Positions 1 to 23,444 of a stretch of DNA of 23,444 nt are shown in pieces. The number at the start of each line of letters is the position of its first letter. Positions within the stretch are counted from its first letter, which is position 1. The DNA is from Piromyces finnis finn (Eukaryota > Fungi > Neocallimastigomycota): the NCBI GenBank assembly GCA_002104945.1, contig MCFH01000152.1:1-23444 (forward strand), given 5' to 3'. Position numbers and translations under genes: made by a program. Under the pieces are notes generated by a model, which saw only the letters and a program-made list of their open reading frames with translations, had not been told where the DNA came from and did not search any database.

Positions 1-1496
1 TTTTAATAAAGATGATTCTTTAATTAATTCTATTCTATGTTCCTTAAAAAATGATGATTTATATAATAAAGTTTGTGTATTTCTTAATGATAAAATTCTT
101 CGTCCCCTCCGATTAGGAATATTAATAAAGTTAAAATTGATAAAGAAGGATTTTTACTTTATGATAATTTAATTTATGTTCCTTCTTCACTAAGAACTAG
201 GGTCTTAGAATTACATCATGATTCTATTTCTGCTGGTCACTTTGGTGTTAATAAAACTATTGAATTAATTAGTAGAAATTTTTGGTGGCCAAAGTTTAGT
301 TATGATGTTAAAAAGTTTATAAAGTCTTGTGAAACTTGTTGTAAAGCTAAAGTTCCAAGACATAAACCATATGGTTTGCTTTCTCCTCTTTCCACACCTA
401 ATAGAGCTTGGTCGGAATTGTCAATGGATTTTATTGTCGAGCTTCCTAAATCCAAAGACATGACTACCATTATGGTTATAGTTGATAGGTTAACAAAAAT
501 GGCTCATTTTATTCCTTTAAGATGTTTGCCTACTGCTTCTATAGCAGCTGATGTTTTTGTTAACAATATCTTTAAATTACATGGTTTTCCTGATTCCATC
601 ATTTCTGATCGAGGTACTCAATTTACCTCAGACTTTTGGAATCGTTTATGTAATTTGTTAAATATTAAACTTGCTTTTTCTACTGCAAACCATCCTGAAA
701 CTGATGGTCAAACGGAGAGGGTAAACGGGATATTGGAACAATATCTCCGTTGTTTTATTAACGAAAAACAGAATAATTGGGTTGACTTGTTACCTTTTGC
801 TGAATTTGCTTATAACAATACTTTACAGCAATCAATCAACCAATCTCCGTTTTTCGCTAATTATGGGTTCAATCCAAAATTTAACCCTGAAATCCCTTCA
901 GCGAATAGACCAAATAGAGCTGAACAAAGAATTTTGGATATTAATGAAAACATTAAATTTTTAAAAGTAAAATCTTGATCAAGCAAAAGAAACCTACAAA
1001 AAGTATGCTGATCAAAAGAGAATGGAATCCCCAGTTTCGAAGTTGGTAAAAAAGTTTGGTTATTAAAAGGTATTAATCCTTCAAATAAAAATATCAAAAG
1101 AAAACTTGCTGATCAAATGCTTGGACCTTTTGAAATAATCAAGAAGGTAAGCCCTTTAGCATTTGAATTAAAATACCAAACAATTTACGTTGCCACCCTG
1201 TTTTTCATGTTTCGTTATTAGAACCTTATAACGAAAATGAATTTGTAAATAGATCAGTAATGAATAAAAGAAAAAATGTTAAGTTAACTACTGATACTAT
1301 TGATAGGATTCCTGATAAGATTATTCAAGAAAGAAATTATCATGGAAAGAAATCTTTCTTGATGACATGGAAAAATCTTGACGAAAATACTTGGATCCCG
1401 GAAGATCAAATTACAGATGTACAATTGATCCAAGAATTTTATAGAAAAATAAAAAGTCTAGAAAAGAAAGTCAAGATCAAGTCATACAAGGAATAA
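1..1496 (+). pseudogene. pol: pol 3' part: integrase (HHCC, DDE core, GPF/Y) plus chromodomain, broken by single-base indels
   Basis: ORF 376-978 is the IN core and ORF 1260-1496 is the chromodomain (KIIQERNYHGKKSFLMTWKNLDENTWIPEDQI). Frameshift at aaagtaaaatctt versus aaagtaaatctt in the other arm. Confidence 0.9.
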
Positions 1497-2003: not shown

Positions 2004-5000
2004 TTATTTCTTTGAAGGAATATCAATTACAAATGGTTGATATCTATGTTTGATCATACCATTGTTATTCCTTGTATAGACTTGATCTTGACTTTCTTTT
2101 CTAGACTTTTTATTTTTTCTATAAAATTCTTGGATCAATTGTACATCTGTAATTTGATCTTCCGGGATCCAAGTATTTTTCGTCAAGATTTTTCCATGTC
2201 ATCAAGAAAGATTTCTTTCCATGATAATTTCTTTCTTGAATAATCTTATCAGGAATCCTATCAATAGTATCAGTAGTTAACTTAACATTTTTCTTTTATT
2301 CATTACTGATCTATTTACAAATTCATTTTCGTTATAAGGTTCCAATAACGAAACATGAAAAACAGGGTGGCAACGTAAATTGTTTGGTAGTTTTAATTCA
2401 AATGCTAAAGGGCTTACCTTCTTGATTATTTCAAAAGGTCCAAGCATTTGATCAGCAAGTTCTCTTTTGATATTTTTATTTGAAGGATTAATACCTTTTA
2501 ATAACCAAACTTTTTTACCAACTTCGAAATCTGGGGATTCCATTCTCTTTTGATCAGCATACTTTTTGTAGGTTTCTTTTGCTTGATCAAGATTTACTTT
2601 TAAAAATTTAATGTTTTCATTAATATCCAAAATTCTTTGTTCAGCTCTATTTGGTCTATTCGCTGAAGGGATTTCAGGGTTAAATTTTGGATTGAACCCA
2701 TAATTAGCGAAAAACGGAGATTGGTTGATTGATTGCTGTAAAGTATTGTTATAAGCAAATTCAGCAAAAGGTAACAAGTCAACCCAATTATTCTGTTTTT
2801 CGTTAATAAAACAACGGAGATATTGTTCCAATATCCCGTTTACCCTCTCCGTTTGACCATCAGTTTCAGGATGGTTTGCCAGTAGAAAAAGCAAGTTTAA
2901 TATTTAACAAATTACATAAACGATTCCAAAAGTCTGAGGTAAATTGAGTACCTCGATCAGAAATGATGGAATCAGGAAAACCATGTAATTTAAAGATATT
3001 GTTAACAAAAACATCAGCTGCTATAGAAGCAGTAGGCAAACATCTTAAAGGAATAAAATGAGCCATTTTTGTTAACCTATCAACTATAACCATAATGGTA
3101 GTCATGTCTTTGGATTTAGGAAGCTCGACAATAAAATCCATTGACAATTCCGACCAAGCTCTATTAGGTGTGGAAAGAGGAGAAAGCAAACCATATGGTT
3201 TATGTCTTGGAACTTTAGCTTTACAACAAGTTTCGCAAGACTTTATAAACTTTTTAACATCATAACTAAACTTTGGCCACCAAAAATTTCTACTAATTAA
3301 TTCAATAGTTTTATTAACACCAAAGTGACCAGCAGAAATAGAATCATGATGTAATTCTAAGACCCTAGTTCTTAGTGAAGAAGGAACATAAATTAAATTA
3401 TCATAAAGTAAAAATCCTTCTTTATCAATTTTAACTTTATTAATATTCCTAATCGGAGGGGACGAAGAATTTTTATCATTAAGAAATACACAAACTTTAT
3501 TATATAAATCATCATTTTTTAAGGAACATAGAATAGAATTAATTAAAGAATCATCTTTATTAAAAGAATTAATTACATTACATGAAATAAAATTACAACT
3601 AAAATTACTACATTCAATATTTTCATTAATCCTATCATTATTATAAATATTACAGATATGATCACTACGTCTGGATAACAAATCAGGTTTACCAGACTTT
3701 TTTCCAGCTCTATAAATTAACTTAAAATCAAATCTTGATAAAAATTCATACCATCTTATCTGTCGTTGTGAGAGCATCTCAGGCTTTCTTGGAAAGGTTA
3801 AATTCTTATGATCAGTATAATGATGAACTGATGCTTTGCACCTTCCAGATAATGCCTCCATTCTTCAAGAGCCACTTTGATAGCGAGCAACTCTTTATCA
3901 TAAATTTGATAGTTCCTTTGAGACTTGGTTAAGCTAGATGAAATAAAAGCAATAGGGTGCAATTGCCCTTCAAATTCTTGTGAAAGAATTGCACCGACAG
4001 CAAAGTTACTAGCGTCAGTCTCAACAATAAAAGGTTTGTTGCTATCAGGGTTCATTAAGATAGGAGCTGAAGTAAAAGCCTTTTTAAGTGTAACAAATGC
4101 ATTTTGACACTCAGAAACCCAATTAAAAGGAACATTTTTCCTAGTAAGTTTGTGTAGAGGACTAGCAATTTTCGCAAAGTCTTTAATAAAAATTCTATAA
4201 TAATTACATAATCCAATAAAGGATTGAACTTCTTTAACGTTTGTAGGAACAGGCCAGTCGAGGATAGCTTTAACTTTATCTCTATCCATTTTCAGACCAT
4301 CTTTGGATAATACATAACCAAGGAAAGTGGTTTCTGAAACATCAAACTCACACTTCTCTAACTTAACATATAAATTATTTTCTAATAATTTTTTCAATAC
4401 TTTTTTAACATGTTCATGATGTTCTTCTAGGCTATTTGAATATATTAGAATATCATCAATATATGATATAGCAAAATCATCTAAATAATCACTAAGGACA
4501 TCATTTATGAAATGTTGAAACGTAGCTGGTGCATTCTTTAAACCAAAAGGCATGACAAGATATTCAAAATGCCCATATCTTGTTCTAAAGGCAGTTTTGT
4601 ATTCATCACCCTCTTTGATTCTAACTAAATTATAAGCAGACTTTAAGTCCAACTTAGTAAAGTATTTTGCACCTTTCACTCTATCCAATAAGTCACCAAT
4701 TAACGGAAGAGGATATGAATTTCTAATTGTCATGTCATTAAGTTTCCTATAATCAACGCAAAGTCTTAATGACCCATCTTTCTTTTTGACAAATAAAACT
4801 GGTGCTCCGGCAGGAGATGAAGATTTCCTAATGAAAACCTTTTTCTAAATTTTCATTGATATAATTTTTTAATTCATCTCTCTCTGCCTCAGTTAAAGGA
4901 TAAAGAGGACCATAAAACAAGTTAGCATTATCCTTTAATCGGATTTCACAATCGTATTCACGATGTGGAGGTAAAATATTACAATTCTTTTCATTAAAAA

Positions 5001-7395: not shown

Positions 7396-8117
7396 TGTAA
7401 AAGTTTTATAAATGTAAAACAGATTATAAAATTTTTTACAATAAAACAACAACACAAAATAAAGAAAAAACAAGAAAATAAATTATATTTAAAAAATATC
7501 TCTTTTATTAATTTTATTTAGTTATTAACTAAATAATAGTCAATAACAATTACATCGTTTAATCAAGAAATTTTACATGCATTATATTTTTCGTAAATAT
7601 ATTTTAATATACTATTCTATTTAATTATACATATATTCAATATAAAATAAACAAAACTAATTTAATACTAATTTAATTAAATAATAAAATAATAAAACTA
7701 AACTAAAACTAATTAAATACACTTTTGATTCAATTTGAGTAAACTGCAAATTGAATACAGTCCATGTATTACCTATATATTAATTAAATATTAATAATAC
7801 TATTTATTATATATTTATAATTAAAAATGCTAATTTAAAACTACGCTAAAGTTATTAAACTAATTTTAATTAAATAAAAACTTTTTAAGATTTAATTTGA
7901 ATATTTAAAATATTTAAATTTAATTATCCATTAATTTAAATATTTATCCAAATTTCATTTCTAACTTTGATATTTTAAAATTAATATTTATTTAATTATT
8001 CCATAAAATTTATACAATAAATTTTATAAACAATTTTTCATTAAAATATCAAAATTATTATTCAATAATTATTAATTAATTATTAAATAATTTAAAGATA
8101 TACTTTATATCTTTACA
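7396..8117 (-). repeat. 5' LTR of element A (722 bp, TGTAAA...TTTACA)
   Basis: The outer end matches the sequence following both PPTs. The inner end has a TGTAAA terminal inverted repeat and is followed by the PBS. Confidence 0.85.
7543..7586 (-). promoter_or_regulatory. Predicted TATA (TATAAT, 7586-7581) and transcript 5' end / self-primer (7553-7543) of element A
   Basis: The self-primer complement should mark the transcript 5' end, and a TATA-like hexamer lies about 30 nt upstream. The AT-rich background weakens the TATA call. Confidence 0.55.
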
Positions 8118-8242
8118 CAAATATAAACTATTTAATTTAAAAATAAGTAAACAATTAAATAAACAAAAAGTTTACATTTATAATTTTAATTTAATAATTT
8201 TATACAAGTTAATTATTTTAATTTTAACTATCTGTGTTTTAA

Positions 8243-8277
<35 letters not shown>
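8243..8277. repeat. (TTA)n microsatellite
   Basis: Uninterrupted tattattat... run of about 11 units. Confidence 0.95.
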
Positions 8278-8279
<2 letters not shown>

Positions 8280-9903
8280 TCATAATTTATAAATTTAATT
8301 ATTTATCAACAAACTGACACACGTTCAAGTATACCTTAATTCTAAATAAGCTTAGAAAGTGGTATATTTGGTATGTATTTGAATGACTTATTTTTACTTG
8401 CTCATTCTACAAGTTTATATAATTATTAAATATAATTTAAAGTTTTAAAAACACATCTTGTTTTATAATATTAATTTATTTATTTAAAATAAATGTATAA
8501 TACATCTCGCTATGTATTATAAAAAAAATATATTAATTTATTATAATTTTAAAATATTCTAATTTTCTTGGCTAATTAGTAACAATCTTTAAAAATAATA
8601 TTTTCTATTTCTATTTATAATAAATAATTACATTTAAGTTTGTTTATAAACAAAAGTTGTTTATATTTTACATTTTTAAAATTTAATTAAACATTATATT
8701 TTATATTATTTTGATTATTTACTATTATTTTAATTTATATTAAGTTTATATAATTTTAAAATCAGCTATTCTATTAATCATTATTTATAAATTTCATTCT
8801 TTATCAAAACTAATGTAAAAGGTTTTTTATATTATTAGTTAATAAGTTATAATTAGTTAATTAAGTTAGTTATTACCTCTCTATACGAGTTAATAACTAA
8901 ATAAAGTTTTATAAAAAATAATAAAAGAAAGAAAATAAATATTATAACACTAAAATAAATATAAACACTGATATAAATATTTTATGAAATAATTCTTACT
9001 TAAATAATTATTTTTAATTATATCTTTTATTTATTTATTATAATATCATACATTAATTATTATTATAGTTATTAATTTACTTTAATACTAACGCTAAAGT
9101 ATTTAACGTTAGTTTAAACTATACTATTTAACTATATTAGTTTATTTTTTTTACCACTTGATTGGGTAAAGCAAATAAACTTCCTATTTAATTAATAACC
9201 ATTAATATATGGTTATGCACATATCTGGCCAATAAATGGTGACCAGAATATATGGTTTCAATTGAAATATTTGTGGGCAAACTTATGGCCACTGTAAAAT
9301 AAACTATACTACAGTTCAGGTTTGTATACACTAAATTAAACTAACACAAACTATGTTTTATTTTTAATAATACTTTTATTTATTTTAAACTATATTAACA
9401 ACCGTTGATTACTTTACCGTGAAGGTTATTTTACCAGAGCCCTTACTAGGTAATCAATTTATTTTTATTTAAAACTAAAATTATTAATCTAAACTATAAA
9501 CTAATGTTAATTTATACTAAATTAACCTATACGATTTTCCAACTATCGTTTCAATAGTTGAAAATTTTTCTTTATTTATACTTTTTAAATAAATTGAATA
9601 AATTCTAATATACATGTTTTAATATTATAATTTTACATGTTTACATTTATACATTTATTAAAAGAAATTATTTGTATTAAACTATTTAAATTCAATTTAT
9701 TTACTAAAGAATTTTCTAAACTTAAAATAAAGTTTTGATTTATTTACTATATGGTTGATTATATTTCAAACATATATTCAATTTATTTATTTCTAATTTG
9801 AGGCTTAGTTTATAAAAAAATTTTTTATTATCTAAAATATTATTGGTTAAAAATTATTTAATTTAAAATTTTATTTTATCATCAAAAACTTATCTTATCA
9901 TAA

Positions 9904-10009
9904 AATAAATTTTACATAATTTATGTTAATGTATTGTGATATAAATTTTTGTAATTAAAGAATAAAATTTACATAAATTTATGTTAACGTATTGGATATA
10001 AATTTGTAA
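9904..10009. repeat. Degenerate tandem duplication, period about 57 bp
   Basis: aataaattttacataatttatgttaatgtattgtgatataaattt versus aataaaatttacataaatttatgttaacgtattggatataaattt. Confidence 0.75.
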
Positions 10010-10140
10010 AAATTTACGGTACATTAATTTAATACATTATACATTATTTTAAATATGTATTAATACATTGTTCTATTAATACAATATTTACAGCCACAAA
10101 TATTTCTTACATGGTACAACCTGTTTGTTTTGTTTGTACC

Positions 10141-10413
10141 TTTATATGGATCAATACAACTAGAATGAATAAAACAATTATTATATTATAATGAAATAAC
10201 ACAACAATAAAATGATTTTTATATTTATGTATTATGTATATTCTTTTTATTTATCTTTGATCAATAATGTACTATTTATATGGATCAATACAACTAGAAT
10301 GAATAAAACAATTATTATATTATAATGAAATAACACAACAATAAAAATGATTTTTATATTTTATGTATTATTGTATATATTCTTTTATTTATCTTTGATC
10401 AATAATGTACTAT
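10141..10413. repeat. Tandem duplication, 134/138-bp units
   Basis: tttatatggatcaatacaactagaatg...tttgatcaataatgtacta starts at 10141 and again at 10275. Differences are mostly indels in A/T runs. Confidence 0.95.
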
Positions 10414-11334
10414 TAATGATTTAAACTCTTATAATAGAAATAAATAAGTATAATTCACTAGATTATAATCTGAATATCACTATTAATTCCTACTTAAATC
10501 TAATAAATATATTTATCTATCTAGTATTATCACTTATGCCTATTTTCTTATTATTATTTCTTATTATCTTTATATCGTTTCTTCTCTTTTAATATTTATT
10601 AATTCTCTTTTATTAAATACTCTTTGTTGTAATTAAGGTTTTTAGTCTTTTTTAATTAATTTATTTATAATTTTATTTTAGTTATTGCTATAAGTGTTAT
10701 TAATTAAATCAATAATTGTTAGCTTATAAATTTATATATTAAATTTTTATTAAACCTAAAATACTTAAAGTAGAATATTATTAGTAAAATTAAAGGTTAA
10801 ATAGGAATTCCTATGCTCTTACATTTTCTGAATCAGTCGTACCATACTGTAAGAAACATAGATAATTCTATATAATTTACCTATTTTCTTATTAATTAAT
10901 ATTATTATAATGTTTATTATTATTTATTGTTTAATACATTAATTTAACACATTATTTAATACACTATTAATACATAATTTGATACATTAATTAAATACAT
11001 TAATTAAATACATTGTTTTATTACATTAATTAGTTGTATCATTTTAACCAATCCATGTATAATGTATTAAATTACTATAAAAGAATAATCTTGATTCTCT
11101 TGAGAAATCAGAGTTATATTATATAAATTATTAATAAATAAAGTTAATATTATTTTAAAAATAATGTTTATTAACGTGTGTTTTAATGTTAATATTATAT
11201 TTTGTTTATTAGTATTTTTATAAAACTCGACATTAATGTTTTATTTCTTTCTCAAATTAGTAATATTTAATTATTATTAATTTGTAGAAGAATTATTTAT
11301 AATTTATTAAAGTAACTTCTTACACATACAACTA

Positions 11335-11893
11335 TGTCACAATAAATTAAAAATTTAAAAAATTTGGACACATGAAAAAAATTAAAAATTTTTTTAAAAT
11401 TGAAAATTTGAAAATTTGAAAAATTTCAAATTATAAAATTTCTAATATTCGAAATTATTAAATTTTTTTAATAATTATTAAAATTTATTAAAAAATTTTT
11501 ATTTTTAAATTATTAACTATTACAATAATTATAATTATATTATAAAAATTAAATATTTATAATTAGATAATAATAATTAAAATTAAAAAATGTAATAATT
11601 AAATTGTTCATTATAAAAAGAACAAAATTGACAAAAATTACGAATTTTAGCATTAGTAATTTTAACTTAAAGTTAATAAAATTATAAACTCCTATAAACC
11701 TAAAACTTTAAAAATTTTAATATTTTTAATAACTTAATATATGCTGATATTAAGTTATTGCTAAATAAAAATATTATTTAATTTCTTTATATAAATTATA
11801 GCTTTACGCCTTCAATAGGAAAGCGTATATATTTGTTAATTAATATAACTAGTGTCTTACCACACTTTCTTTAATAAAAAAATCGCTTTGACA
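11335..11893 (+). repeat. Candidate 5' LTR of element B (559 bp, TGTCA...TGACA)
   Basis: Perfect 5-bp terminal inverted repeat, followed by a self-complementary PBS and then the gag ATG at 11972. TATAAAA at 11612-11618 lies about 30 nt before the PBS complement. There is no second LTR in the window to confirm it. Confidence 0.6.
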
Positions 11894-11904
11894 TTACTAA
11901 CGCT
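11894..11904 (+). other. Candidate self-priming PBS of element B (TTACTAACGCT)
   Basis: 10/11 complementary to AGCATTAGTAA at 11649-11659 inside the candidate LTR. Confidence 0.55.
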
Positions 11905-11971
11905 TATATAAAAGTCGCTAAGCACCAATTAGTTAGTAATTATAATAACTAAATATAATAATTAAAGTTTA

Positions 11972-13420
11972 ATGGAAAATCTCCACTTACACCTATAAAG
12001 TGATACAAAAGAATTTTTAACCGCCTACAAACTACCAAGAGAGAACGTTCCCCAGAAATACTCCCGAAGAAAATCAAAGATGCCTATCATTCCGGACAAA
12101 TTAATGCTTCTACGAGTAATCCTACTCAGAAGCCAACTACTAATGAGGATCTCAAGGCCCTCATTGATCTTTAATGCTACCTTACTGGGATATCAATCAG
12201 TTAAAGGTTGATATTCAAGCTACCAGAAGGGAAAACGAAAGCTCAATGATCGTTTGACTTTTGGAAAACTCTACTCAAGTTATTATGGGTAAGATGGCTA
12301 CTTTAGAAGTCAACGATGCTAGGAAAGACAATCAACTCGCTGATATCAAAGCTCATATCAGCAAAGCTACTCAAGAGTTGATGAGTTGTTACTCCCGTAC
12401 TCCTTCTACTACACCCTCACGAACCTGACGGTGACGTCATCATGGAGATGCTTCCCTCCAAACGTCGCTGAAAAAAATGCTTTCTTACTCAGAGAAATTC
12501 AACTACGCAGTTCATCCGTCGATGCGAACACCACTCTTAAGACACATCAATTCTATGGAAACAATGAAGCTATGAAAGTAAACTTCATTGAAGATTGTCT
12601 ACTGGTGATGCTGCAGATTGGTACGTTGTTGAACAAGCAGACTTCCAGGAATTCATCCGAATAGAAAAGTTCTTTACGAAGCTTTGAGTAAGAGATTCCT
12701 TAACCCGAAGGATATCAACATCACCAAAATCGACCTGATGAAGCTCAGACATAGTTGGGGAAAAGCTTCCGAATACTTAGGAAAATTCTCCCAATATGTC
12801 AAATTAATTGGATGTCCGAAGACATTCAATTAACCATCATGCTTTTCCAATTAGACCTACCGTGAACCACGCCTTTAGTAAGTAACTTCTGATAGACAAA
12901 CGTTAGAAAACTGAAGAATCTCTAATCAAATATGATGCTTCCAAGGATACTTATACGATGATACTTTGGAAAGACAAGCTAACTACAAGGACAAAGAGCC
13001 CTTAATAGTAATTATTAGGTATTCATGGCAGTCTTTATTCCAAAAACCCTAACAAGAATAACAATCGAATAACAACCAAAGGAACAACAATAACAGCAAT
13101 CGCCCGTCTAACCAAAAAGGAAAAGGCTCCAGTAACTGGATAGCAATCGTACTAAAAATCCCAATAAAAGTACTAAACCTAATAATGGTACTTCATACTC
13201 CAGCTATCTCTGTGAGTAGAAGAGCAAGATATCTTAGAGCTACCAAATCCTGATCCGGAGAAGTATCCCATCGTGAAGACTAGTGTAAAAACTTCTAAAG
13301 GATCTAGACAGGTTATCAACTTCGTCTCTCTTAGATTCTGGCTCTACTACCAATGTATCCATATGGATTTAGTGAAGAAACAGGAATAAGACCATACCAG
13401 CTGATACTGTTGTAAAGGTC
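11972..13420 (+). pseudogene. gag: Frameshifted gag and protease N-terminus of element B
   Basis: Fragments in shifting frames: coiled-coil-like LENSTQVIMGKMATLEVNDARKDNQLADIKAH, TGDAADWYVVEQ, LYEALSKRFLNPKD..LMKLRHSWGKASEYLGKF, and protease SLLDSGSTTN (LDSG 13331-13342). No CCHC knuckle was seen. Confidence 0.75.
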
Positions 13421-16400
13421 ATGGGAGGTAATGTCCTAATGCATTACATCACAGAAGAGTTCAACATTGTAATGAACTTATCTTCTTTAGGAAGAACTCG
13501 AGAAGAAGTTCGTCAATACAAACTTCGATGCCACGTAGCTGATCAGCTTCCTTCTTCGATTCTCCTAGGTTCTAAGTTCATGAAAACCAACTTCTTCTGT
13601 ATCTTTACACAACCTGACCATTCCTTTACAGTTAAAATTGGTCCTGTTCCTTTCTCCAACCATAATGGATCTGAGATTAAATCTCCTAACTTTAGGAATG
13701 ATTTGAAGAAATCTACACCTCTTCATGAATTACGCGAAGTCCTCCAAAAGAGACAGTTCGTCTTAGACGAACAATGGGACAAAGAACATTTGAACGATCG
13801 AGGAAGAATCGTGATCAAGAAACAATCAAGCAAGAAACCCAATAATAACCATGTCCACAACACAGAAACGATAACCCTATCCAACGAAGAAAAACTGAAA
13901 ATCGAACAAAGGCTTCTTAAACAAAAACAAAACAATCAAAGTTTTATAATCTCAACTGACCATAAAGAAGGACTCGACGAATACATTATCAAGGAAATAC
14001 AAAACCTCCCTCAAGAATTACAAGAATTCAAGCAAGTTTTCGGACCACCACCAAAGGGCAAGATATTTAATAGGAAAAACGAAAATTTAAATTCATACTT
14101 ACCTTATGATAAGGAAAAAGTTAAGAGGCTACCCATGATGCCTCACATCAAATTAGACAAAAACCAAGAAGACGCTCTTGAACAAGAATTTCATGAACTT
14201 GAACAGAACGGAAAAATCGAGAGAACTCGATCCAGTTCGGCTTGCAACGTCTTTAATGCACCTAAGAAAGATGGTACATTCAGAACTGTGTTTAATTACG
14301 TTATGGTTAATAATTGCCTACACCATAACAACTACCCAATACCTAAAATAATCGAACTTGTACACAGAGCTGCCCAGTATAAGTTCCATATTTTACTAGA
14401 TTTAAGAAATGCCTATAACCAAATCTATCTCGAGCCCAAATATCGTTTCCTTACAAGCTTTAGATTTAAAAACCAAACCTATCAATGGAAAGTTCTTCCC
14501 TTTGGACTCTCCACTGCCCCATCCATTTTCCAATCCATTCTCAACCTCTTATTAAAAATATACTTGAATAAAGGTATTGATATCTACCTAGATGATATAC
14601 ATATTTATGCCCAAGATAAGCAAGAATGCCTCAGACTTTGTGCTTACACTTTAAAGAAGTTCAAAGAAAATAATTTCTTTTGTAAACTTGAAAAATGCTT
14701 ATTTTTCCCAGAAGAATTCGAATATTTAGGGTACAAAATTGGATATGAAAAAATACGTCCTATTTCTAATAAAACTTTAGACATTAAAGAATGCAAAACA
14801 CAAAAGGAATATCAGCAACTATATGGCTTTCTTAATTATTTCAAAGACTACGTAAATAACTTTACCGAAAGAACAAAATATATCTCTATGGGACTATCAA
14901 ATAAAACCACTACTTGGACTAAAGAAATGAATGACGAACTAAATTATTTTAAGAAATTAATTCCTAACCTTCCAAATTTAGCACCGTTTAAACCTAACCA
15001 CGATATCTTTATCCTAACCGACGCATCGGAAATCGGAATTGGCGCCGCAATTTTTCAAGCGGGGGCCCCCAATGTACATATTCAAAATTACATTTTAAGT
15101 AACGTATACAAGAATAATATTAATCGTGAAATCATCGAAAACTTATTTGGTCATAAAAATTGGACATTAAACGGACATTCTGAAGTAAATGGACGTGAAA
15201 ATAAGAAAATCGATAAAGCCAAGAATCGTGAAGATATCAATCCACCAATTAAATTGAATGAAGCAATGAATACATTTGAAATAAAAAACAATAGTTTATC
15301 CGAATTAAAAAAGTATTTAAAACCCATAGGCTTTTTCTCCAGAAAATTGAATTCTACAGAAAGAAAATATTCAACATTCGACAGAGAATTATTAGCTCTC
15401 TCGGACACCTTACAACACTACCGGTTACTTCTCCAACAAGGACAAAAAATATACTGTGCGACGGACCATAAGAATTTGGTAATCTACATAAATTCCGGAT
15501 CCAAAGTCGAAACTAATCGTAAGTTAAGATTATTTGAAAATATTTGCAATTACAATATAATACCTTATTATATCGAAGGAAAAGACAACAAGATTGCAGA
15601 TCTACTCTCAAGATTTATTAAAATGGAAAACGAAACCGAAAATACTAGCAACAGAAGAAACCCACAGCAGGTCAACAATATTGAAGAAACAAATTCTTTG
15701 GATTTCTTAGTAAATGCCATTGAACTCAAGGACTTAGAATCTACCAACAAAGAAGAAGATAACGAGGAACCAGACTTAAAAGTCTTTAAGACTACCATAA
15801 GTTCGCTAATGGAAAATAATAAACAAAAGGAACTAAAAAATTATCTTATCAATTGGTACAAGAACCAGGATATGTTATTCAAATCATTGAAGGAACAAAT
15901 AGTAAACCTACTAGAAGAAAACACTTTCTTCGAAAAACAATATAAAAAACAAGTTAATCTCAGATGTCAAGACCTAAAAGATGTATTGGATAAAAGAGAA
16001 CATTTTAGTTCAGAAATAAAAAAGGTGAAAGATGAATTACAACTTCTACAAACTGGCAACACCCAAGGAGAAACTAAAAGAAAATTTGATAGACTTAATC
16101 AAAAAATAAACGATTTAAGGTATGACCTCAATCCAAAGGCTGAAAGAATAGAACTCACTAAGAAAGTAAACCATTCGGAAAAACAGATAACTGCCCAATG
16201 GAAAGAGATAGAAAACCTCAAGAAAATAATAGAAAAAATGGATAAAAGGATAACTGCCCTAATCATTGACAACGAAGAAGACTCAAATCTGGATAAATCA
16301 ACTTCCATTCCAACAGAAACAGTCTTCATAGTCGATGATCAGAATCCTGAACTAGTAGAATCTATCAACGGTATACCTTTGGAATATGAAGATTTATATG

Positions 16401-19336
16401 AAGCCTTCAATGAAGAACGAGCCGATGAACTTCCTGAACATCGTGTATATGATTGTTCTATTGATTTGAAACCTAATGCTTCATTATTTTATGGGCCAAT
16501 TTATCCAACTACTCCTACTGAACGTCAATTTATTAAGGAGTATATTGAAGAAAACTTGAATAAAGGATTCATTAGAAAATCCCGATCTCCTGCTGGACAT
16601 CCAGTTCTACTCCAAGATAAGAAGGATGGTAGTCTCAGATTTTGCGTTGACTATCGCAAGCTCAACGACCAAACTATCAAGAATGCCTATCCGCTACCTT
16701 TAATCCTATCAGTCTTTGAATCAATGAAAGGTGCTAACTATTTCACTAAGTTAGACCTCAAGTCAGCTTATAATTTAATTAGGATTAAAGAAGGTGACGA
16801 ATACAAGACTGCATTTAGGACGGCATTTGGTCACTTTGAGTACTTAGTCATGCCTTTTGGACTAACTAATGCTCCTGCAGTTTTCCAAGCTTTCATTAAT
16901 GATATCTTTAGTGATCAAATTAATAAGTACGTTCAAGTGTAATTGGATGATATCATTATCTACTCCAAGACCCTTGAAGAACATGTTCAACATGTTAGAA
17001 ATGTTCTTCAATTAATCATTGAAAACAACTTAGTTGCGAAACTCAAAAAATGTGAGTTTCACAAAGCTGAAATCGAATTTTTGGGTCACGTAATCAGTAA
17101 GGAGGGAATCAAAACTGATCCTCACAAAATTGAAGCAGTTAAGAACTGGCCTATCCCCACTACTGTGAAAGAAGTTCAGTCTTTCTTAGGGTTATGCAAT
17201 TACTACCGTCGCTTTATCTCTAACTTTTCTAAAATTGCAAAACCATTATACAACTTAACTAAGAAAGGCGTCACTTTCATATGGACAGACGAGTGTAATA
17301 GAGCATTTAATCAACTTAAAGAATTTCTTACTTCAGCTCCAGTTTTACTTTGTCCTGATCACGATAAACCATTCATAGTTGAATGTGACGCAAGTGACTT
17401 TGCTATCGGGGGAGTACTTTCACAAAAAGGTGATGATGGAGACCTGCATCCAGTTTATTACTTTTCTAAAACCCTTCATGATGCAGAACTTAATTACTCT
17501 ATCACCGAAAAGGAACTCTTAGCAATTCGTCAAGCTTTTATCGAATGGCGTCACTTACTTCAAGGTGCAAAATATCCTATTACCGTTTATTCAGACCATC
17601 GAAACTTGCTTTTTGCTACCAAACCGCAACTTCTATCCCAAAGACAAGCTCGTTGGCAAGAATACTTTGCTACTTTTGATTTCAAGATTATCTATCGACC
17701 AGAAAAGAAAAATGGTAAAGCTGATGCTCTCTCTCGTAGATCCGACCATATGCTCACAGTTGGTAAGGATATAAGTGAATCATCCTTACTTAAACCAACT
17801 CAATTAGAAGGATTCAACGAAGATGAATGCTACTTCTCTATGGAAACTAGCTTCATTGACGACATTAAGCAGTGCTACCTTCAAGATGAAACCGCTTGTC
17901 AGATTCTTAAGGATCTTGAAGTTCCAAATAGTGATCATCCTTGGATTCTTCAAGATGGCCTTTTAATAAGAACCAAACATCCGGAGCAAGTATATGTTCC
18001 AAGTCAACTAAGACTCTTAGTTATTAAGCTCAACCATGATGCACCCACTGCCGGTCACTTGGGAGTCGATAAGACTTATGACATTCTTAAACGTAATTTC
18101 TATTGGGTTAATATGCGTCAAGATGTCGAGTCTTATATTCGAAGCTGTAGTGTATGCAAGGCAATGAAAACCGATCACCATGCTCCTTATGGTAATATGA
18201 TCCGTGTCCCTCTTCCGGAACTTCCATGGCAACATCTACAAATGGACTTTATCACGGACTTACCATCAAGACCTTGTAACTCTACCTTACCATTCGACTC
18301 TACCAATCCGAACCACTATCAAGGTACCATAATGGTTACTACTTGCTACTTAACTAAGATGATACACTTAGTTGGGTTCAAACATTTATCCACTGCTAAG
18401 GAAACTGCTACTGCTTTTCTTAACCATATTTTCAAACTGCACGGATTCCCCTTATCTATTGTTACAGACCGTGGTACTCAGTTCGAAAGTCGTCTTTGGT
18501 TCCACTTGATGGAATTCTTTAATATCGATCACCACTCTGCTACTACTGGCCATCACCGCACTGTTGGACAAGTAGAACGTAACAACGACTACGTCGAAAC
18601 TTATCTTCGTTGCTACTTAGCTCAATTTGATGATCTCAGTTGGATGGATCATTTGTACTTAGCTGAATTTTGCTACAACAATTCCATCCATGCTTCCACC
18701 AAGCAACCACCATTTCTCTCCGTCTATAATTATCAAGTTCACGCAAACCCACAAATTGCAGACCTTGTTTCTTCTTTAGGACTTCATCCCCTCATCGATA
18801 GCTTCTCCCATAACTTAGCTGACCTTAAGCATACTCTCGAAGTCAGTCGTACCCGTTATCTCGATGAAAAGGATAAGCACCTTTATCACAACTTTAAGCG
18901 CTTCAAGGTCCACGATCTTGTTTGGCTTCGCAAACCCGCTAATTATCATCCTCCATTAGCGTTCAAGCTCCAAACCCGCAAGTATGGTCCATACAAGGTC
19001 ACTGGTGTCGATGAATCTAAGCTCAACTACCGCCTTGATTTATCTACCTCACCTTTCCCTCGTGTCTACCCCGTATTCCACATCAGTGAACTCGAACCAT
19101 ATCATCCCACTCCTCACCATCTATTGCTCAACCATCCCAACTCCAATGAAATCACCAAGATCCTTAGTTCTCGTAAATCGGGTCATTTTTACGAGTACTT
19201 AGTCACTTTTACTGACTTATCTCAACGTTGGATCAATGCTGACACCATTGATAAGGATGACTACTACAGCACCCTTTTAGCTGATTACCAACGTCGCGCT
19301 TACCAACAATTCACCAATTCCGTCCCAGATTCTTAA
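13421..19336 (+). pseudogene. pol: Chimeric pol: PR C-half, RT1, RH1, coiled coil, RT2, RH2, integrase and chromodomain-like tail, in one frame with a single internal TAA (16940-16942)
   Basis: ORFs 13421-16942 and 16943-19336 are contiguous and in frame. PR ILLG; RT1 YLDD (14585-14596); RH1 TDAS/DRELL/ATDH; RT2 V*LDD; RH2 ECDAS/TEKELL/SDH; IN HDAPTAGH..CSVC, MDFI, TDRGTQF, GQVERNN, GPY; tail ITKILSSRK..YEYLVTF. Confidence 0.92.
13730..16276 (+). mobile_element. Inserted fragment of a second retroelement family: RT - RNase H - coiled coil (2547 bp, 849 codons)
   Basis: Switch from C/T-rich to A-rich sequence near 13727-13733. Similarity to the copy at 22033-23444 stops exactly at IIDNE (16276). 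The ends are flanked by GAA/GAA. The left junction is uncertain by a few bases. Confidence 0.85.
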
Positions 19337-19675
19337 TCTGGACCCCACTTATTAGTATCCCACCTACTAGTGTCTACCACCCTTACTCCTTCACTACCCA
19401 CCTATCGCCACTACCCCACCTACTACCCACAACTCCGCTACCCACTAGTCGCCACCACTACAACTACCAACCACTATTCCGCTACCCAACCACCCTCTTT
19501 CGCCTTTGCCCTCAACCCTCAAATTCCGCAACCTTTTCCGCATCCCAAAATCCGTATCCCCTCGAGTCATATCATTTCCCTAACCTTCACGTGTAGTCTC
19601 CATTTCTGAAGAATCCACGTGATACCCTCACAACTTTTCTTTGAACACTTTTACACCTCACTTTTTCAACACTTA
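19337..19675 (+). other. C-rich, G-poor low-complexity 3' region of element B (ccactac/cctac motifs)
   Basis: Strong strand asymmetry is visible directly, with repeated ctacc/ccact words. Confidence 0.8.
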
Positions 19676-19683
19676 GAAAAATT

Positions 19684-20886
19684 TTGAGAATTTTCAAAAA
19701 ATGGAAATTCTCAATTTTTGAAAAAAAATCTAAGGTAGCACGTAACGTATTACGAAGAGCAATGAGAAATAGAATGGTGCATAATAAAGCAAGACAATTG
19801 GCTCAAAATTTAGGACGTAGAGCAAGAGATAGGATTGTACGAAGAAATCGTAGGATTGGCAATAGACAATTCGAATCAGTTAAAGGAAATGCTGCTGGTA
19901 CAACCCATACTACAACACGTATGATAGTACGTAGAACACCACGCGAACAACGATTTTTACGCAAATTGTTTAAAACAAACCCTACTAAAAACAAATATAT
20001 AAACAGATTTGGTTTTTCTTGGATGGGTGCTGGTGCAGCCTCAAAAACTATTTGGTATAGTGTTTGTCATTTAAAGTTCAATAATTTATGTAATTATTTA
20101 CAAGGTCGTAAAATCTTACCGACACAGAGTATAGAAGGAGTTTCTGCTACAGTAACCAATGATAAAGCCGTGGGAAATTCCCCATCAGCTGGTATTTACG
20201 TTGGTAAATGTACATTCCATTACGAATTGTATAACCCAACTAATTATTTAATGACCGTATACATTTACGATTTAATTTGTAAATGTGATACACCACATCA
20301 AATAGCATATTCTGATGCTAATAATGATGGTAATAGTGCCCCTGAAGCTTGTATGCAAAAGGGTTCAAAATCCATGACCGATGGAGGTTCTGCCCCAACA
20401 TGGCAAGTTGCAGACCCTACACTCGAAATGGGTACATATTGGAATACTGTTGGTATGAAACCAACGGACTATCATTTATTTAATACGATTTGGAAAGTCA
20501 AAGGAATGAAAAAAATCATTTTACCACCTGGATCATCACACCATCACGTGGTTATATACAACCCAAAAAAGAAGATAACCAATGCTAGTTTATTATACCC
20601 TAGAGAAACTAGACATACTAATAATAAAATGGGTATTGGTGGTATTACACAAGCAACTTTATTTGGTTTTGAAGGTCAAGTTGCAACTGAAGACAATCAA
20701 CGTAGTGATGGTACAATTGTAGGTACATTACCTGGTAAATTATTAGTTAAATGTATTAAAAAGGTAAATATATGGGATCTTCCATGTAACTATCAATCAG
20801 TAACATCTGAAGATGATTTAGTAGCAACATGGACTAAACCAACTATATTCTCTGATTTAGTAGAAGTCAATGCAAGCTCTACATAA
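19684..20886 (+). CDS. cap: CRESS-DNA (circular ssDNA) virus-like capsid protein, uninterrupted; first in-frame ATG at 19762
   Basis: Arg-rich N-arm (RNVLRRAMRNR..GRRARDRIVRRNRR) followed by a beta-rich body. Segments ELYNPTNYLMTVYIYDLICK and GMKPTDYHLFNTIWKVKGMKKIILPPGSSHHH resemble single jelly-roll capsids of environmental CRESS viruses. It converges on a Rep remnant. Confidence 0.85.
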   Translation: MRIFKKWKFSIFEKKSKVARNVLRRAMRNRMVHNKARQLAQNLGRRARDRIVRRNRRIGNRQFESVKGNAAGTTHTTTRMIVRRTPREQRFLRKLFKTNPTKNKYINRFGFSWMGAGAASKTIWYSVCHLKFNNLCNYLQGRKILPTQSIEGVSATVTNDKAVGNSPSAGIYVGKCTFHYELYNPTNYLMTVYIYDLICKCDTPHQIAYSDANNDGNSAPEACMQKGSKSMTDGGSAPTWQVADPTLEMGTYWNTVGMKPTDYHLFNTIWKVKGMKKIILPPGSSHHHVVIYNPKKKITNASLLYPRETRHTNNKMGIGGITQATLFGFEGQVATEDNQRSDGTIVGTLPGKLLVKCIKKVNIWDLPCNYQSVTSEDDLVATWTKPTIFSDLVEVNASST

Positions 20887-20887
20887 G

Positions 20888-21086
20888 AACACGTGACATA
20901 CAACTAAGTTAACGTGTTTGATCCCTGTGAGCCGCAGGCTCTAGACCCTGGCCGTTGACTATCACATGTTTATATCTCATGGTGATCATGTGATGAGTCA
21001 CACCCTCCCACTTATCCATAGCCAAGTGGTTCTGAGAGGATTGTTTCCTACTCTGGACGGACGGCTCTGGGGGAGTAGGAGGAACA
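20888..21086. other. GC-richer intergenic region tiled by five stem-loops
   Basis: aacacgt/acgtgtt (20888-20918); gagcc/ggctc (20929-20941); tgact-atcacatg/catgtgat-g-agtca (20956-21000); cctc-ccactt/aagtgg..gagg (21004-21039); tgtt-tcctactc/gagtagga..aaca (21042-21086). Confidence 0.75.
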
Positions 21087-21156
21087 GATTTTTTTATTAT
21101 TTTTATTTAACACAAAATGTATACAACACAAATATAATGTAATGTAATGTAAATAT

Positions 21157-21169
21157 AATAAACTTTATT
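21157..21169. terminator. Back-to-back polyadenylation signals AATAAA-c-TTTATT for convergent cap and rep transcripts
   Basis: AATAAA on + at 21157-21162 and on - at 21169-21164, the latter overlapping the rep stop codon. Confidence 0.6.
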
Positions 21170-21303
21170 TAATATAATTTATTTTGTAAAACAATACAAG
21201 TACAATTTTTTTTTAAAAAGTTTAAGTGTTCAATATTTAAATTCTTATATAAATCTTCATTGGATAACCAAATCATTGGTTTTCCCCAATGAACCGTTCT
21301 TTT
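21169..21303 (-). pseudogene. rep: C-terminal remnant of a geminivirus/genomovirus-like Rep (end of the SF3 helicase domain)
   Basis: KRTVHWGKPMIWLSNED...LNFLKKNCTCIVLQNKLY* matches the WGKP-x-IWL-x-N...W/FL-x-x-NC C-terminus of gemini/genomo-type Reps (WGKP at 21288-21277). No Walker A/B or HUH motifs are recognisable upstream. Confidence 0.8.
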
Positions 21304-21765
21304 AAAATTAAATTGCCTGTTCGTTTTAGTAAAAACTAACGGGGGCCTTTTCTTCAATGGTAACTAGATAATATGTAGCTATGGCTATATACTATTTCGG
21401 GTATTGGCCTACTTATCTTAGGAAATCTAAAATACTTAAACCAATGTATATGTAGTATTGACGTTAAAGAGCCTACTTTAAGGAATTTTCACGTAAGTAA
21501 AACTCGTTTGTGATTTATGCGTTTTATATAATAATTTTATTTAATATGTTTTATTATAAGTTTATTTATAAGATCAAAGTTATTTAAAAGTTTGTTGTTT
21601 TATTAATTCTTTATCCTCTGTTGCTATATTGTCGAGGAAGACTATCTTTTTCTAGTGATTAATAATAACTAACAAATACTTTTAAAAGTTATAAAGTTTT
21701 ATAAATAAATGAATTTTTTCGAATTAATACGTTTGAGTTTAAAATTTTCGTTACAAATTTTATAT

Positions 21766-21869
21766 TACGAATTTAAATTACGAATTTTAACTACGAATTA
21801 AAACTACGAATTTTAACTACGAATTAAAACTACGAATTTTAATCACGAATTTTAACCACGAATTTTAAA
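21766..21869. repeat. Eight tandem copies of a 13-bp unit, consensus [t/c]acgaattttaac
   Basis: Units start at 21766, 21779, 21792, 21805, 21818, 21831, 21844 and 21857. Confidence 0.95.
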
Positions 21870-22032
21870 TTAGAAAAAACTAAAGTTTTAAAATAATACA
21901 TTTAGATGATATTTATACATGATTATTAAATTTAGCTATAATATTATTAATAAACTATTACTAATAGAATTTTTAAAGTTATATTAAATATAAATAATTT
22001 TAACTAATTAGATTCATTTTTTGTGTTTAAAG

Positions 22033-23444
22033 TTAGTCAAATGTTTCTTGGTTCTTTTTCATTGGTTCATTTGTTAAATCGATTTCTATTTGAAAGTTCG
22101 AAAGTTTTCTTTTCTTAAGTTCATTACTAATTACGGCTTCGGAAGCGGGGAAGATTTCCTTTAATTCGTTATCAATTATCAAAGCATTGATTCTTTTACT
22201 AATACTTTCGATTTTATTTCTAAGTTCTTCTGTTTCCTTCCATTGGGCAGTTAATTGTTTTTCCGTTTTATTAACCTTTCTAGTAAGTTCGATGCGTTCG
22301 GCCTTTGGGTTTAGATCATATCTAAGGTCGTTGATTTTTTGATTTAATTTGTTGAATTTTCTTTTAACTTCTACTTGAGTGTTTCCTGTTTGAAGAAGTT
22401 GAATTTCGTCTTTTACCTTTTTAATTTCTTGATTAAACTGTTCCTTTCTGTCCAAGACTTCTTTTAAGTCTTCGCATCTTAAATTAATCTGCTTTTTATA
22501 TTGTTTTTCATAATAAGTGTTTTCTTCTAATAGGTTAATAATTTGTTCTTTCAAGCTTTTGAATAGTTTATCCTGATTTCGATACCATTTGTATAGGTAA
22601 TCCTTTAATTCTTCTTGTTTATTGCTTTCGATTAATGAATTGATTGTAACTTTAAAGACTTTGAAGTCGGTGTCTTCTTTCTTTTCATTATTGTTTGATG
22701 ATTCCTTATCTTTTAATTCAATTGTGTTGATTATAAATCTAGTGAGTTCATTTCCTCTATGTTGTTTATCTGTTGTGGATTAGCTATAGTATTATTGTTT
22801 ACTTCATTACTTTGTTCCATTTTGATAAATCTTGATAATAGGTCCGCTATTTTGTTATCTTTTCCTTCTATGTAGCAAGGTATAACATTAAAATTGCAAA
22901 TATTCTCGAATAGTCGTAGCTTTCTATTTGTTTCGACTTTGGAACCAGAGTTGATATAGATTACTAGGTTCTTGTGGTCCGTGGCGCAATAGATTTTTTG
23001 TCCCTGTTGAAGTAATAATCTGTAGTGATGAAGAGTATCTGAAAGGGCTAGCAGTTCACGATCAAAAGTCGAGTATTTTCTCTCAGTTGAATTTAGTTTT
23101 CTTGAAAAGAAACCTATTGGCTTTAAATATTTTTTAAGTTCTGTTAAACTATTATTCTTTATTTCAAATGTATTCATAGCCTCATTTAATTTCATTGGAG
23201 GATCGATATCTTCACGATTTTTGGCTTTATCGGATTTATTATTTTTGCGTCCATAATGTCCGTTATACGTCCACTTCTTATGACCAAATAGATTTTCGAT
23301 TGTTTACGATTGACATTATTCTTGTATACGTTACTTAAAATGTAATTTTGAACATGTACATGGGGGCCCTCCGCTTGGAAAATTGCGGCACCAATTCCGA
23401 TTTCCGAGGCGTCGGTTAGAAAAAAAATGTCATGGTTAGGTTTG
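22033..23444 (-). pseudogene. Second copy of the RT-RNase H-coiled-coil family (RNase H plus coiled coil to the natural stop), frameshifted, running off the window end
   Basis: The reverse complement encodes KPNHDIF..TDASEIGIGAAIFQ, PIGFFSRKLNSTERKYSTFDRELLAL, ATDHKNL, IADLLSR, then LKEQIINLLEENT...INALIIDNELKEIF...ETFD*. It is homologous to ~14990-16276. Confidence 0.92.

Follow-up and report, generated by a model that had tools for sequence, protein, structure and literature searches.

A 23,444-bp contig of the anaerobic gut fungus Piromyces finnis (GCA_002104945.1), analyzed over its whole length and called the window below, very probably carries a partial, rearranged endogenous copy of a small circular DNA virus, single-stranded and encoding a Rep (a CRESS-DNA virus), from an unclassified, genomovirus-like lineage, lodged in the nuclear genome of the fungus. 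The best reading of the data as a whole is repeated, fairly recent endogenisation of this lineage. An earlier reading of the same DNA, made from its letters alone (the sequence-only reading), had proposed an endogenous CRESS-DNA segment at the 3′-3′ junction of a capsid gene and a Rep gene of gemini/genomovirus type. This proposal was upheld by relatives on virus-sized contigs, the predicted fold of the capsid, the match of the Rep tail, and the presence of the same arrangement in a 911-kb contig, MCFH01000015.1 (locus L001; the L001-to-window offset at the capsid is 10022). At least three further loci of the P. finnis genome hold virus copies that are truncated in different ways, namely L003 (contig 11), L004 (contig 48), and L005 (on the same 911-kb contig, ~50 kb away).

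We propose that the source was the double-stranded replicative form of a virus of ~2.8 kb, which would have encoded a capsid protein of ~412 amino acids (aa) and an unspliced Rep of ~340 aa, and that the copy was joined into a transposon-rich nuclear region by illegitimate recombination. Within the window, the copy comprises a capsid gene that lacks its 5′ end, followed by the short spacer between the genes and the final ~44 Rep codons. A host retroelement landed in Rep later, leaving the 5′ remainder of that gene ~6.8 kb away, with three frame changes and no Walker B region.

Capsid gene and its predicted fold

The capsid gene remnant is an open frame of 400 codons on the plus strand (19684..20886), recognized from the list of open reading frames (ORFs), its relatives, and a structural model. 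An uninterrupted capsid-like ORF of ~400 codons had been noted here and is indeed present, but the accompanying claim of an intact capsid did not survive. The capsid part of the ORF comprises codons 18-400 (window 19735-20883), and the first 17 codons are unrelated sequence. The listed start codon, TTG, is one that the bacterial table allows, and an ATG first appears in frame at codon 27 (window 19762). Aligned with P0110, a complete paralog of 412 aa, the window frame is 99% identical to residues 30-412, and it shows the same N-terminal offset against the free relative P0002. Judged from these alignments, the capsid gene is incomplete: the frame is open, but the native start codon and the first ~29 codons are gone and replaced by unrelated sequence. 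The public annotated gene model of the window capsid begins only at residue 114. Directly in front of the capsid frame, and running into it, is a stretch of 55 nt (19659..19713, no strand assigned; inverted repeat 93% complementary, L001 9637-9691 / 18853-18907) that repeats, in inverted orientation, the leader and initial codons of the Rep 5′ part; the left junction is therefore rearranged.

A word search returned 104 capsid relatives, mostly on contigs of 2.0-3.0 kb. The best free relatives (~416 aa) share 63-66% identity with the query across 96% of its length and are found on contigs of 2.6-2.9 kb. Few matches carry a name, among them 'capsid protein [Cattle blood-associated gemycircularvirus]' (P0074) and 'MAG: capsid protein [Cressdnaviricota sp.]' (P0077). 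A Pfam scan and a PDB sequence search with the capsid ORF gave nothing significant. Modeling with AlphaFold, from an alignment of 46 relatives that did not include P0074, gave a pLDDT of 82.4. When this model was compared with solved structures by Foldseek, only jelly-roll virus capsids matched, i.e., those of satellite tobacco necrosis virus (STNV), circoviruses, a geminivirus, and picornaviruses; for the STNV, circovirus, and geminivirus capsids, the probability was 0.97-1.0 with modest TM-scores of 0.4-0.5. Among predicted viral structures, the matches were capsids of unclassified CRESS-DNA viruses (E down to 3e-26, TM 0.5-0.65). The sequence-only reading had pointed to an Arg-rich arm and had named structure prediction as a check for a jelly-roll, and both came out in its favor: residues 18-70 contain 15 Arg and 2 Lys in 53 positions, whereas Arg and Lys make up 11% of the remainder. 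The modeled protein thus has the single jelly-roll with a basic N-terminal arm that characterizes capsids of Cressdnaviricota.

Two CACGTG palindromes are found a short way upstream of the capsid frame (window 19590-19630) and a third just past its stop codon (20890-20920), with another ACGTG nearby; these may be a binding site or a matter of chance.

Broken Rep gene, spacer, and origin

The Rep gene is on the minus strand (21169..23444), is broken, and runs off the window end. Only its 3′ end (~44 codons and the stop) adjoins the spacer, and the remainder is outside the window, past a nested retroelement. The sequence-only reading had placed a Rep C-terminus on this strand. The ORF exists (21169..21357, 62 codons) and is Rep-like, but only in its last ~44 codons (window 21172-21304); the upstream ~18 codons are part of a 95-bp repeat and are not virus-derived. 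DNA likeness to the other genomic copies ends at window 21304, within one base of the end, 21303, that had been assigned to the segment.

The Rep tail was searched exhaustively against 1.84 billion proteins. Its best match, P0105 (343 aa), aligns by its last 53 residues (68% identity, E 2.9e-17), and a more distant match, P0109, has Gemini_AL1 and Gemini_AL1_M. The similarity searches that had been suggested for both genes ended in CRESS capsid names on one side and the C-terminal end of ~340-aa Reps on the other. Pfam and PDB sequence searches with the 62-codon tail and the short Rep pieces yielded nothing significant.

We rejected the earlier view of an amputated Rep, cut off where the virus DNA was integrated, as its 5′ part is present past the nested retroelement, beyond the end of the short contig, and is colinear with P0105; the gene is interrupted instead. 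Minus-strand pieces of L001 on the far side of the retroelement, aligned one by one, correspond to P0105 residues 1-66, 129-200, and 200-249. In a translated comparison with P0105, the Rep 5′ part (L001 18125-18853) gave four stretches in three frames with no internal stop (239/343 residues). For the whole Rep gene, P0114 was matched in five stretches and three frames, with three frame changes and 285/345 residues covered. About 150 nt with the Walker B region of the L004 copy have no counterpart in the L001 Rep. In all, Rep has a single large insertion and a single deletion, besides three frame changes.

The window portion of Rep holds motif C and the C-terminal end only, and the off-window pieces of L001 hold motifs I and II and the Walker A loop, with motif I in the N-terminal piece. 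In L004, Rep is an uninterrupted frame of 330 codons in which motifs II and III, Walker A, Walker B, and motif C are all present. The identity of this frame to P0105 is 54%, its Pfam Gemini_AL1_M score is 24.5 bits against a cut-off of 24, and its close relatives have precomputed Gemini_AL1 matches. When the window, the off-window pieces, and the L004 frame are combined, the motifs are those of an HUH endonuclease (motifs I-III) joined to a superfamily-3 helicase, the Rep architecture that characterizes Cressdnaviricota.

Between the convergent stop codons is a spacer of 282 nt (20887..21168), which corresponds to the short intergenic region of the virus. The structured intergenic region that had been described here was confirmed, as the predicted fold has a z of -4.2 and none of 200 shuffles was as good. 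The left 204 nt, which are the structured part, have a GC content of 49%, and the right 78 nt have 13%. The spacer is 96.6% alike with that of L004; in L003, ~570 extra bases (11309-11878) are present in the capsid-Rep spacer compared with the window and L004. Opposed poly(A) signals had also been cited in support of a convergent junction. AATAAA hexamers are present in the spacer, one on the plus strand and three on the minus strand, all within the 13%-GC part; however, the window background is 3.2-3.4 per kb per strand, and we rejected the hexamers as evidence since their frequency is at the chance level.

L003 contains a complete 412-codon capsid gene and an intact intergenic region between the Rep and capsid starts, in which a 14-bp interrupted stem carries TAATATTAT in its loop. 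An origin stem-loop with a nonanucleotide between the gene 5′ ends, as expected for Cressdnaviricota, is therefore present in this paralog. No origin nonanucleotide was found in the virus-derived stretch of the window with the L003 nonamer as the pattern, its last base widened to Y as in the gemini/genomovirus consensus. Because its Rep is broken and its virus-derived stretch lacks the nonanucleotide, the copy in the window would neither make Rep nor be replicated, and would have no autonomous function.

Genomic placement, further copies, and surroundings

The product of the capsid frame, P0001, was placed on two contigs of GCA_002104945.1, the window and the 911,805-bp MCFH01000015.1, and its cluster mates carry the name Piromyces finnis. 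The window and L001 agree at 99% identity across 13.4 kb and differ by 2 mismatches and 117 small gaps; a single locus was assembled twice, the window being the rougher version, and L001 continues past the window end. The window looks like an unpolished redundant contig, and its broken transposon frames may be sequencing errors. In the same comparison (window 10140-23444 versus L001 1-13424), one copy of a 139-bp tandem repeat (L001 2-279) is absent from the window. Since a 99% identical copy is inside a 911-kb contig, the virus-derived DNA is integrated rather than a stray virus contig: at the level of the assembly, it has host retroelements on both flanks and one nested inside. This embedding also supports the link between a CRESS lineage and this host that had been drawn from the sequence.

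Free virus DNA of the culture or sample, misjoined to fungal sequence by the assembler, was considered as an artefactual source. The window is a short, error-rich contig (the 117 small gaps relative to its twin), and long-read assemblies can produce chimeras. However, the same arrangement is found ~45 kb from the end of the 911-kb contig, a host retroelement is nested inside Rep, and the virus genes are truncated and frameshifted. In addition, three other loci hold differently decayed copies, on other contigs save for L005, which is on the same 911-kb contig. We rejected contamination or misjoining on the basis of the long-contig placement, the nested retroelement, and the decayed further copies, and consider it hardly credible.

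The further copies differ from one another and from L001. In L003, Rep pieces are present on both sides of the copy, and that genome was therefore opened within Rep. The capsid gene of L004 has one stop. L005 retains capsid codons 1-188, also with one stop, and abuts a small N-terminal piece of Rep. The flanks differ among L001, L003, and L004, whereas L005 is colinear with L001 in the upstream long terminal repeat (LTR) and the downstream flank and may be a segmental duplicate of it; for this reason, the separate integrations are counted as at least three.

Divergence among the copies is uneven. The capsid-spacer-tail module (L001 9713-11282) is 96.6-98.4% alike across L001, L003, L004, and L005, and the adjoining Rep 5′ modules are 75-85% alike. 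The window and L003 capsids differ by 19 substitutions in 1149 nt (14 synonymous and 5 non-synonymous) with no insertions or deletions, and the ratio of non-synonymous to synonymous rates (dN/dS) is 0.095. Against the L004 capsid there are 7 synonymous and 16 non-synonymous changes, and dN/dS is 0.62. When the Rep pieces were each compared alone with the L004 frame, synonymous sites were near saturation and the proportion of non-synonymous differences (pN) was far below that of synonymous ones (pS), and the Rep modules thus diverged as working genes and come from clearly distinct viruses. The mosaic of capsid and Rep 5′ modules may have come from recombinant viruses with a common capsid module, from gene conversion between loci, or from retention by the host.

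The last of these is a proposal in its own right, in which the fungus has kept the capsid module as a co-opted gene or as a template for antiviral small RNA, by selection or by gene conversion between loci. It draws on the 383 homologous codons that are open with an in-frame ATG at codon 27, on the dN/dS of 0.095 against L003, on capsid modules that are 96.6-98.4% identical at four loci next to Rep modules at 75-85%, and on the gene models that the public annotation places on virus copies. Yet the window copy has lost the native start and first ~29 codons, its annotated model begins at residue 114, two of the four copies have a stop or are cut to 188 codons, and the dN/dS against L004 is 0.62. 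Moreover, 19 substitutions are so few that chance alone would be expected to leave the frame unbroken, and divergence that took place in the virus, prior to integration, explains the low dN/dS equally well. We regard retention as unlikely, and the open capsid frame is most likely due to a young insertion. The sequence-only reading had offered recent integration or retention of cap as alternatives; recent integration is favored, and retention less so. A wider version, which we consider doubtful, is that the capsid module was kept alike and open across loci for host use (as a co-opted capsid protein or antiviral RNA) and, more broadly, that the insertions record an ongoing association of anaerobic gut fungi with diverse, recombining DNA mycoviruses, which would make up part of the unassigned CRESS contigs of herbivore gut viromes.

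Several points weigh against the repeated, fairly recent endogenisation that we favor. Integration is read from the assembly alone, and the two contigs are not independent evidence, as they are the same locus assembled twice. The mosaic of capsid and Rep 5′ modules goes beyond what simple independent integration by itself would give. Selection at the level of the host would be consistent, too, with the dN/dS of 0.095 found when two open capsid copies are compared. Finally, uptake of foreign DNA by the gut fungus without infection is formally conceivable.

The surroundings of the virus-derived DNA are rich in retroelements. The window is very AT-rich (12-45% GC) and packed with Ty3/gypsy-type retrotransposon frames. 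The nested retroelement is ~6.8 kb long and in minus orientation. Its coding part in the window (22033..23444, minus strand) contains RNase H and coiled-coil ORFs, a neighbor that is not virus-derived, and further on in L001 it has a gag-like ORF and protease-reverse transcriptase (PR-RT); Pfam RVT_1 and RT_RNaseH were found on L001 ORFs. It is 76-77% identical, in inverted orientation, to window 13766-16276. Two retroelement copies of this kind, which lack an integrase and are 73-80% alike, are inverted around the gypsy pol gene and the virus DNA (window 13766-16276, plus strand, and 22165-23443, minus strand; L001 3819-6254 / 12143-14571). The 95-bp repeat mentioned above is a direct repeat (97% identical) that flanks the nested element (window 21301-21395, L001 18028-18122). 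A target-site duplication of Rep sequence was rejected as its origin, since it has no counterpart in the uninterrupted L004 Rep; its length exceeds what is usual for such a duplication, and it could represent a very short LTR.

Upstream of the virus DNA is the pol ORF of a Ty3/gypsy-type retrotransposon (16943..19336, plus strand, 797 codons) with the end of RT, RNase H, integrase, and SH3 (Pfam RT_RNaseH_2, RT_RNaseH, Integrase_H2C2, and SH3_Tf2-1), and its stop is 348 nt ahead of the capsid frame. The tract between the pol stop and the virus DNA (19337..19658, no strand assigned) is C-rich and repeat-like, with 49% GC and a GC skew of about -0.4. It has no likeness in L003, L004, or L005, and it is probably the 3′ untranslated region of the retrotransposon. 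A 5′ LTR of TG...CA type (11335..11893, plus strand) begins the block that encloses the gypsy pol gene and the virus DNA, and its partner is L001 18987-19607. The two are direct repeats 17.8 kb apart with 8 mismatches in 616 aligned bases and small gaps. In L001, the virus-derived DNA is followed by a purine-rich tract and then by the 3′ LTR.

This layout raises the possibility that an LTR retrotransposon carried the virus genes as cargo, having picked them up between pol and the 3′ LTR as happens with env-like genes, and that retrotransposition spread them. The virus DNA is indeed between the gypsy pol ORF and the purine-rich tract that abuts the 3′ LTR of the pair, and in L005 the capsid fragment is likewise preceded, at a similar distance upstream, by an LTR of this family. 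However, the context is not common to L003 and L004, the virus break points differ among the copies, and no matching target-site duplication was found at the flanks of the LTR pair. The block is a nest of insertions that includes two further retroelement copies in inverted orientation, and L001 and L005 may be segmental duplicates. We consider capture as cargo very unlikely and read the context of the virus DNA as nesting in a transposon-rich region.

Other features of the contig were noted in passing. An ORF of 1173 codons (within window 13421-19336, plus strand) encodes RT/RNase H and a coiled coil followed by a second gypsy-type RT in one frame, and it leads into the 797-codon RNase H-integrase ORF; this may be a chimeric retroelement or a nested one that stayed in frame. 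Near the contig start, both strands encode the same integrase sequence of amino acids (window 376-978, plus; 2277-3861, minus), an inverted duplication that could be a real rearrangement or a palindrome of long-read assembly. Between two retrotransposons, ~4 kb (window 7500-11300) have a GC content of only 12-17%.

Relation to known viruses and the likely host

The closest family for comparison is Genomoviridae, whose type member is SsHADV-1 and which comprises CRESS-DNA viruses associated with fungi. The lineage described here resembles it in several respects: the capsid and Rep genes converge; Rep belongs to the Gemini_AL1 / Gemini_AL1_M type and has Walker A, Walker B, and motif C; the loop of the origin stem-loop (in the paralog L003) holds TAATATTAT; and the host is fungal. 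A word search with the L004 Rep returned ~27 clusters at 53-64% identity on contigs of 1.2-3.5 kb; matches below 41% identity included 'Genomoviridae sp.', several gemycircularviruses, and Rep-like genes of basidiomycetes. By identity only, named genomovirus Reps are 30-40% identical, compared with 53-64% in the lineage's own cluster. Genomovirus genomes are ~2.0-2.4 kb; the relatives found here are mostly on contigs of 2.6-3.0 kb, an indirect measure by which the genome would be too large for the family, and a capsid of 412 aa and a Rep of ~340 aa alone need 2.26 kb. The capsid of ~412 aa has no Pfam family, and Rep is unspliced, as both L004 and the free-living relatives have it in a single uninterrupted frame. 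The sole capsid match named 'gemycircularvirus' is P0074, from a virus that no paper in the literature searched names and that may or may not be a classified genomovirus. Collectively, the Rep type and the nonanucleotide match those of Genomoviridae, whereas genome size, capsid size, and low Rep identity would speak against membership.

The nearest relatives are those of the metagenome lineage in which P0074 and P0077 are the closest named members, with capsids 46-66% identical over nearly the full length (~100 clusters) and Reps at 53-64% (~27 clusters) on contigs of similar size. These are free, virus-sized contigs, unlike the integrated, truncated, and interrupted copy in P. finnis, and the two were compared by their proteins. 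Endogenous gemini-like Reps of basidiomycetes (Serpula lacrymans, Laccaria bicolor, Flammula alnicola, and Trametes sanguinea) have the same Pfam families inside fungal chromosomes. However, they are 33-47% identical, were matched as Rep alone rather than as capsid, spacer, and Rep, and come from a phylum other than Neocallimastigomycota.

No paper in the literature searched links CRESS viruses, genomoviruses, or geminiviruses to Piromyces or to Neocallimastigomycota. UniRef has given these genes automatic names ('Capsid protein', 'CRESS-DNA virus Rep endonuclease...'), i.e., they have been flagged by machine already. The kind of element is known, and the host link to Neocallimastigomycota appears to be unreported in the literature searched. 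Most CRESS-DNA virus contigs from gut and fecal samples have no known host. A likely host is now given to a virus lineage so far seen only as metagenome contigs (~100 capsid and 27 Rep clusters, almost all unnamed), which has become part of an anaerobic gut fungus's chromosomes at no fewer than three separate places; we infer that the fungus is a present or past natural host.

CRESS-virus insertions in the genomes of Entamoeba and Giardia have been used for host assignment (PMC7493932; follow-up PMC9615429, in which anaerobic fungi are not mentioned). As in those cases, integrated capsid and Rep remnants tie a lineage of gut metagenomes to a gut eukaryote; there the hosts are protists and the virus families are other ones. 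The evidence from P. finnis is of the same kind as that which assigned CRESS families to Entamoeba and Giardia. It also counsels caution, in that such contigs in surveys of cattle blood or rumen may derive from gut fungi and not from the animal. The finding would extend genomovirus-type DNA mycoviruses to the early-diverging fungal phylum Neocallimastigomycota.

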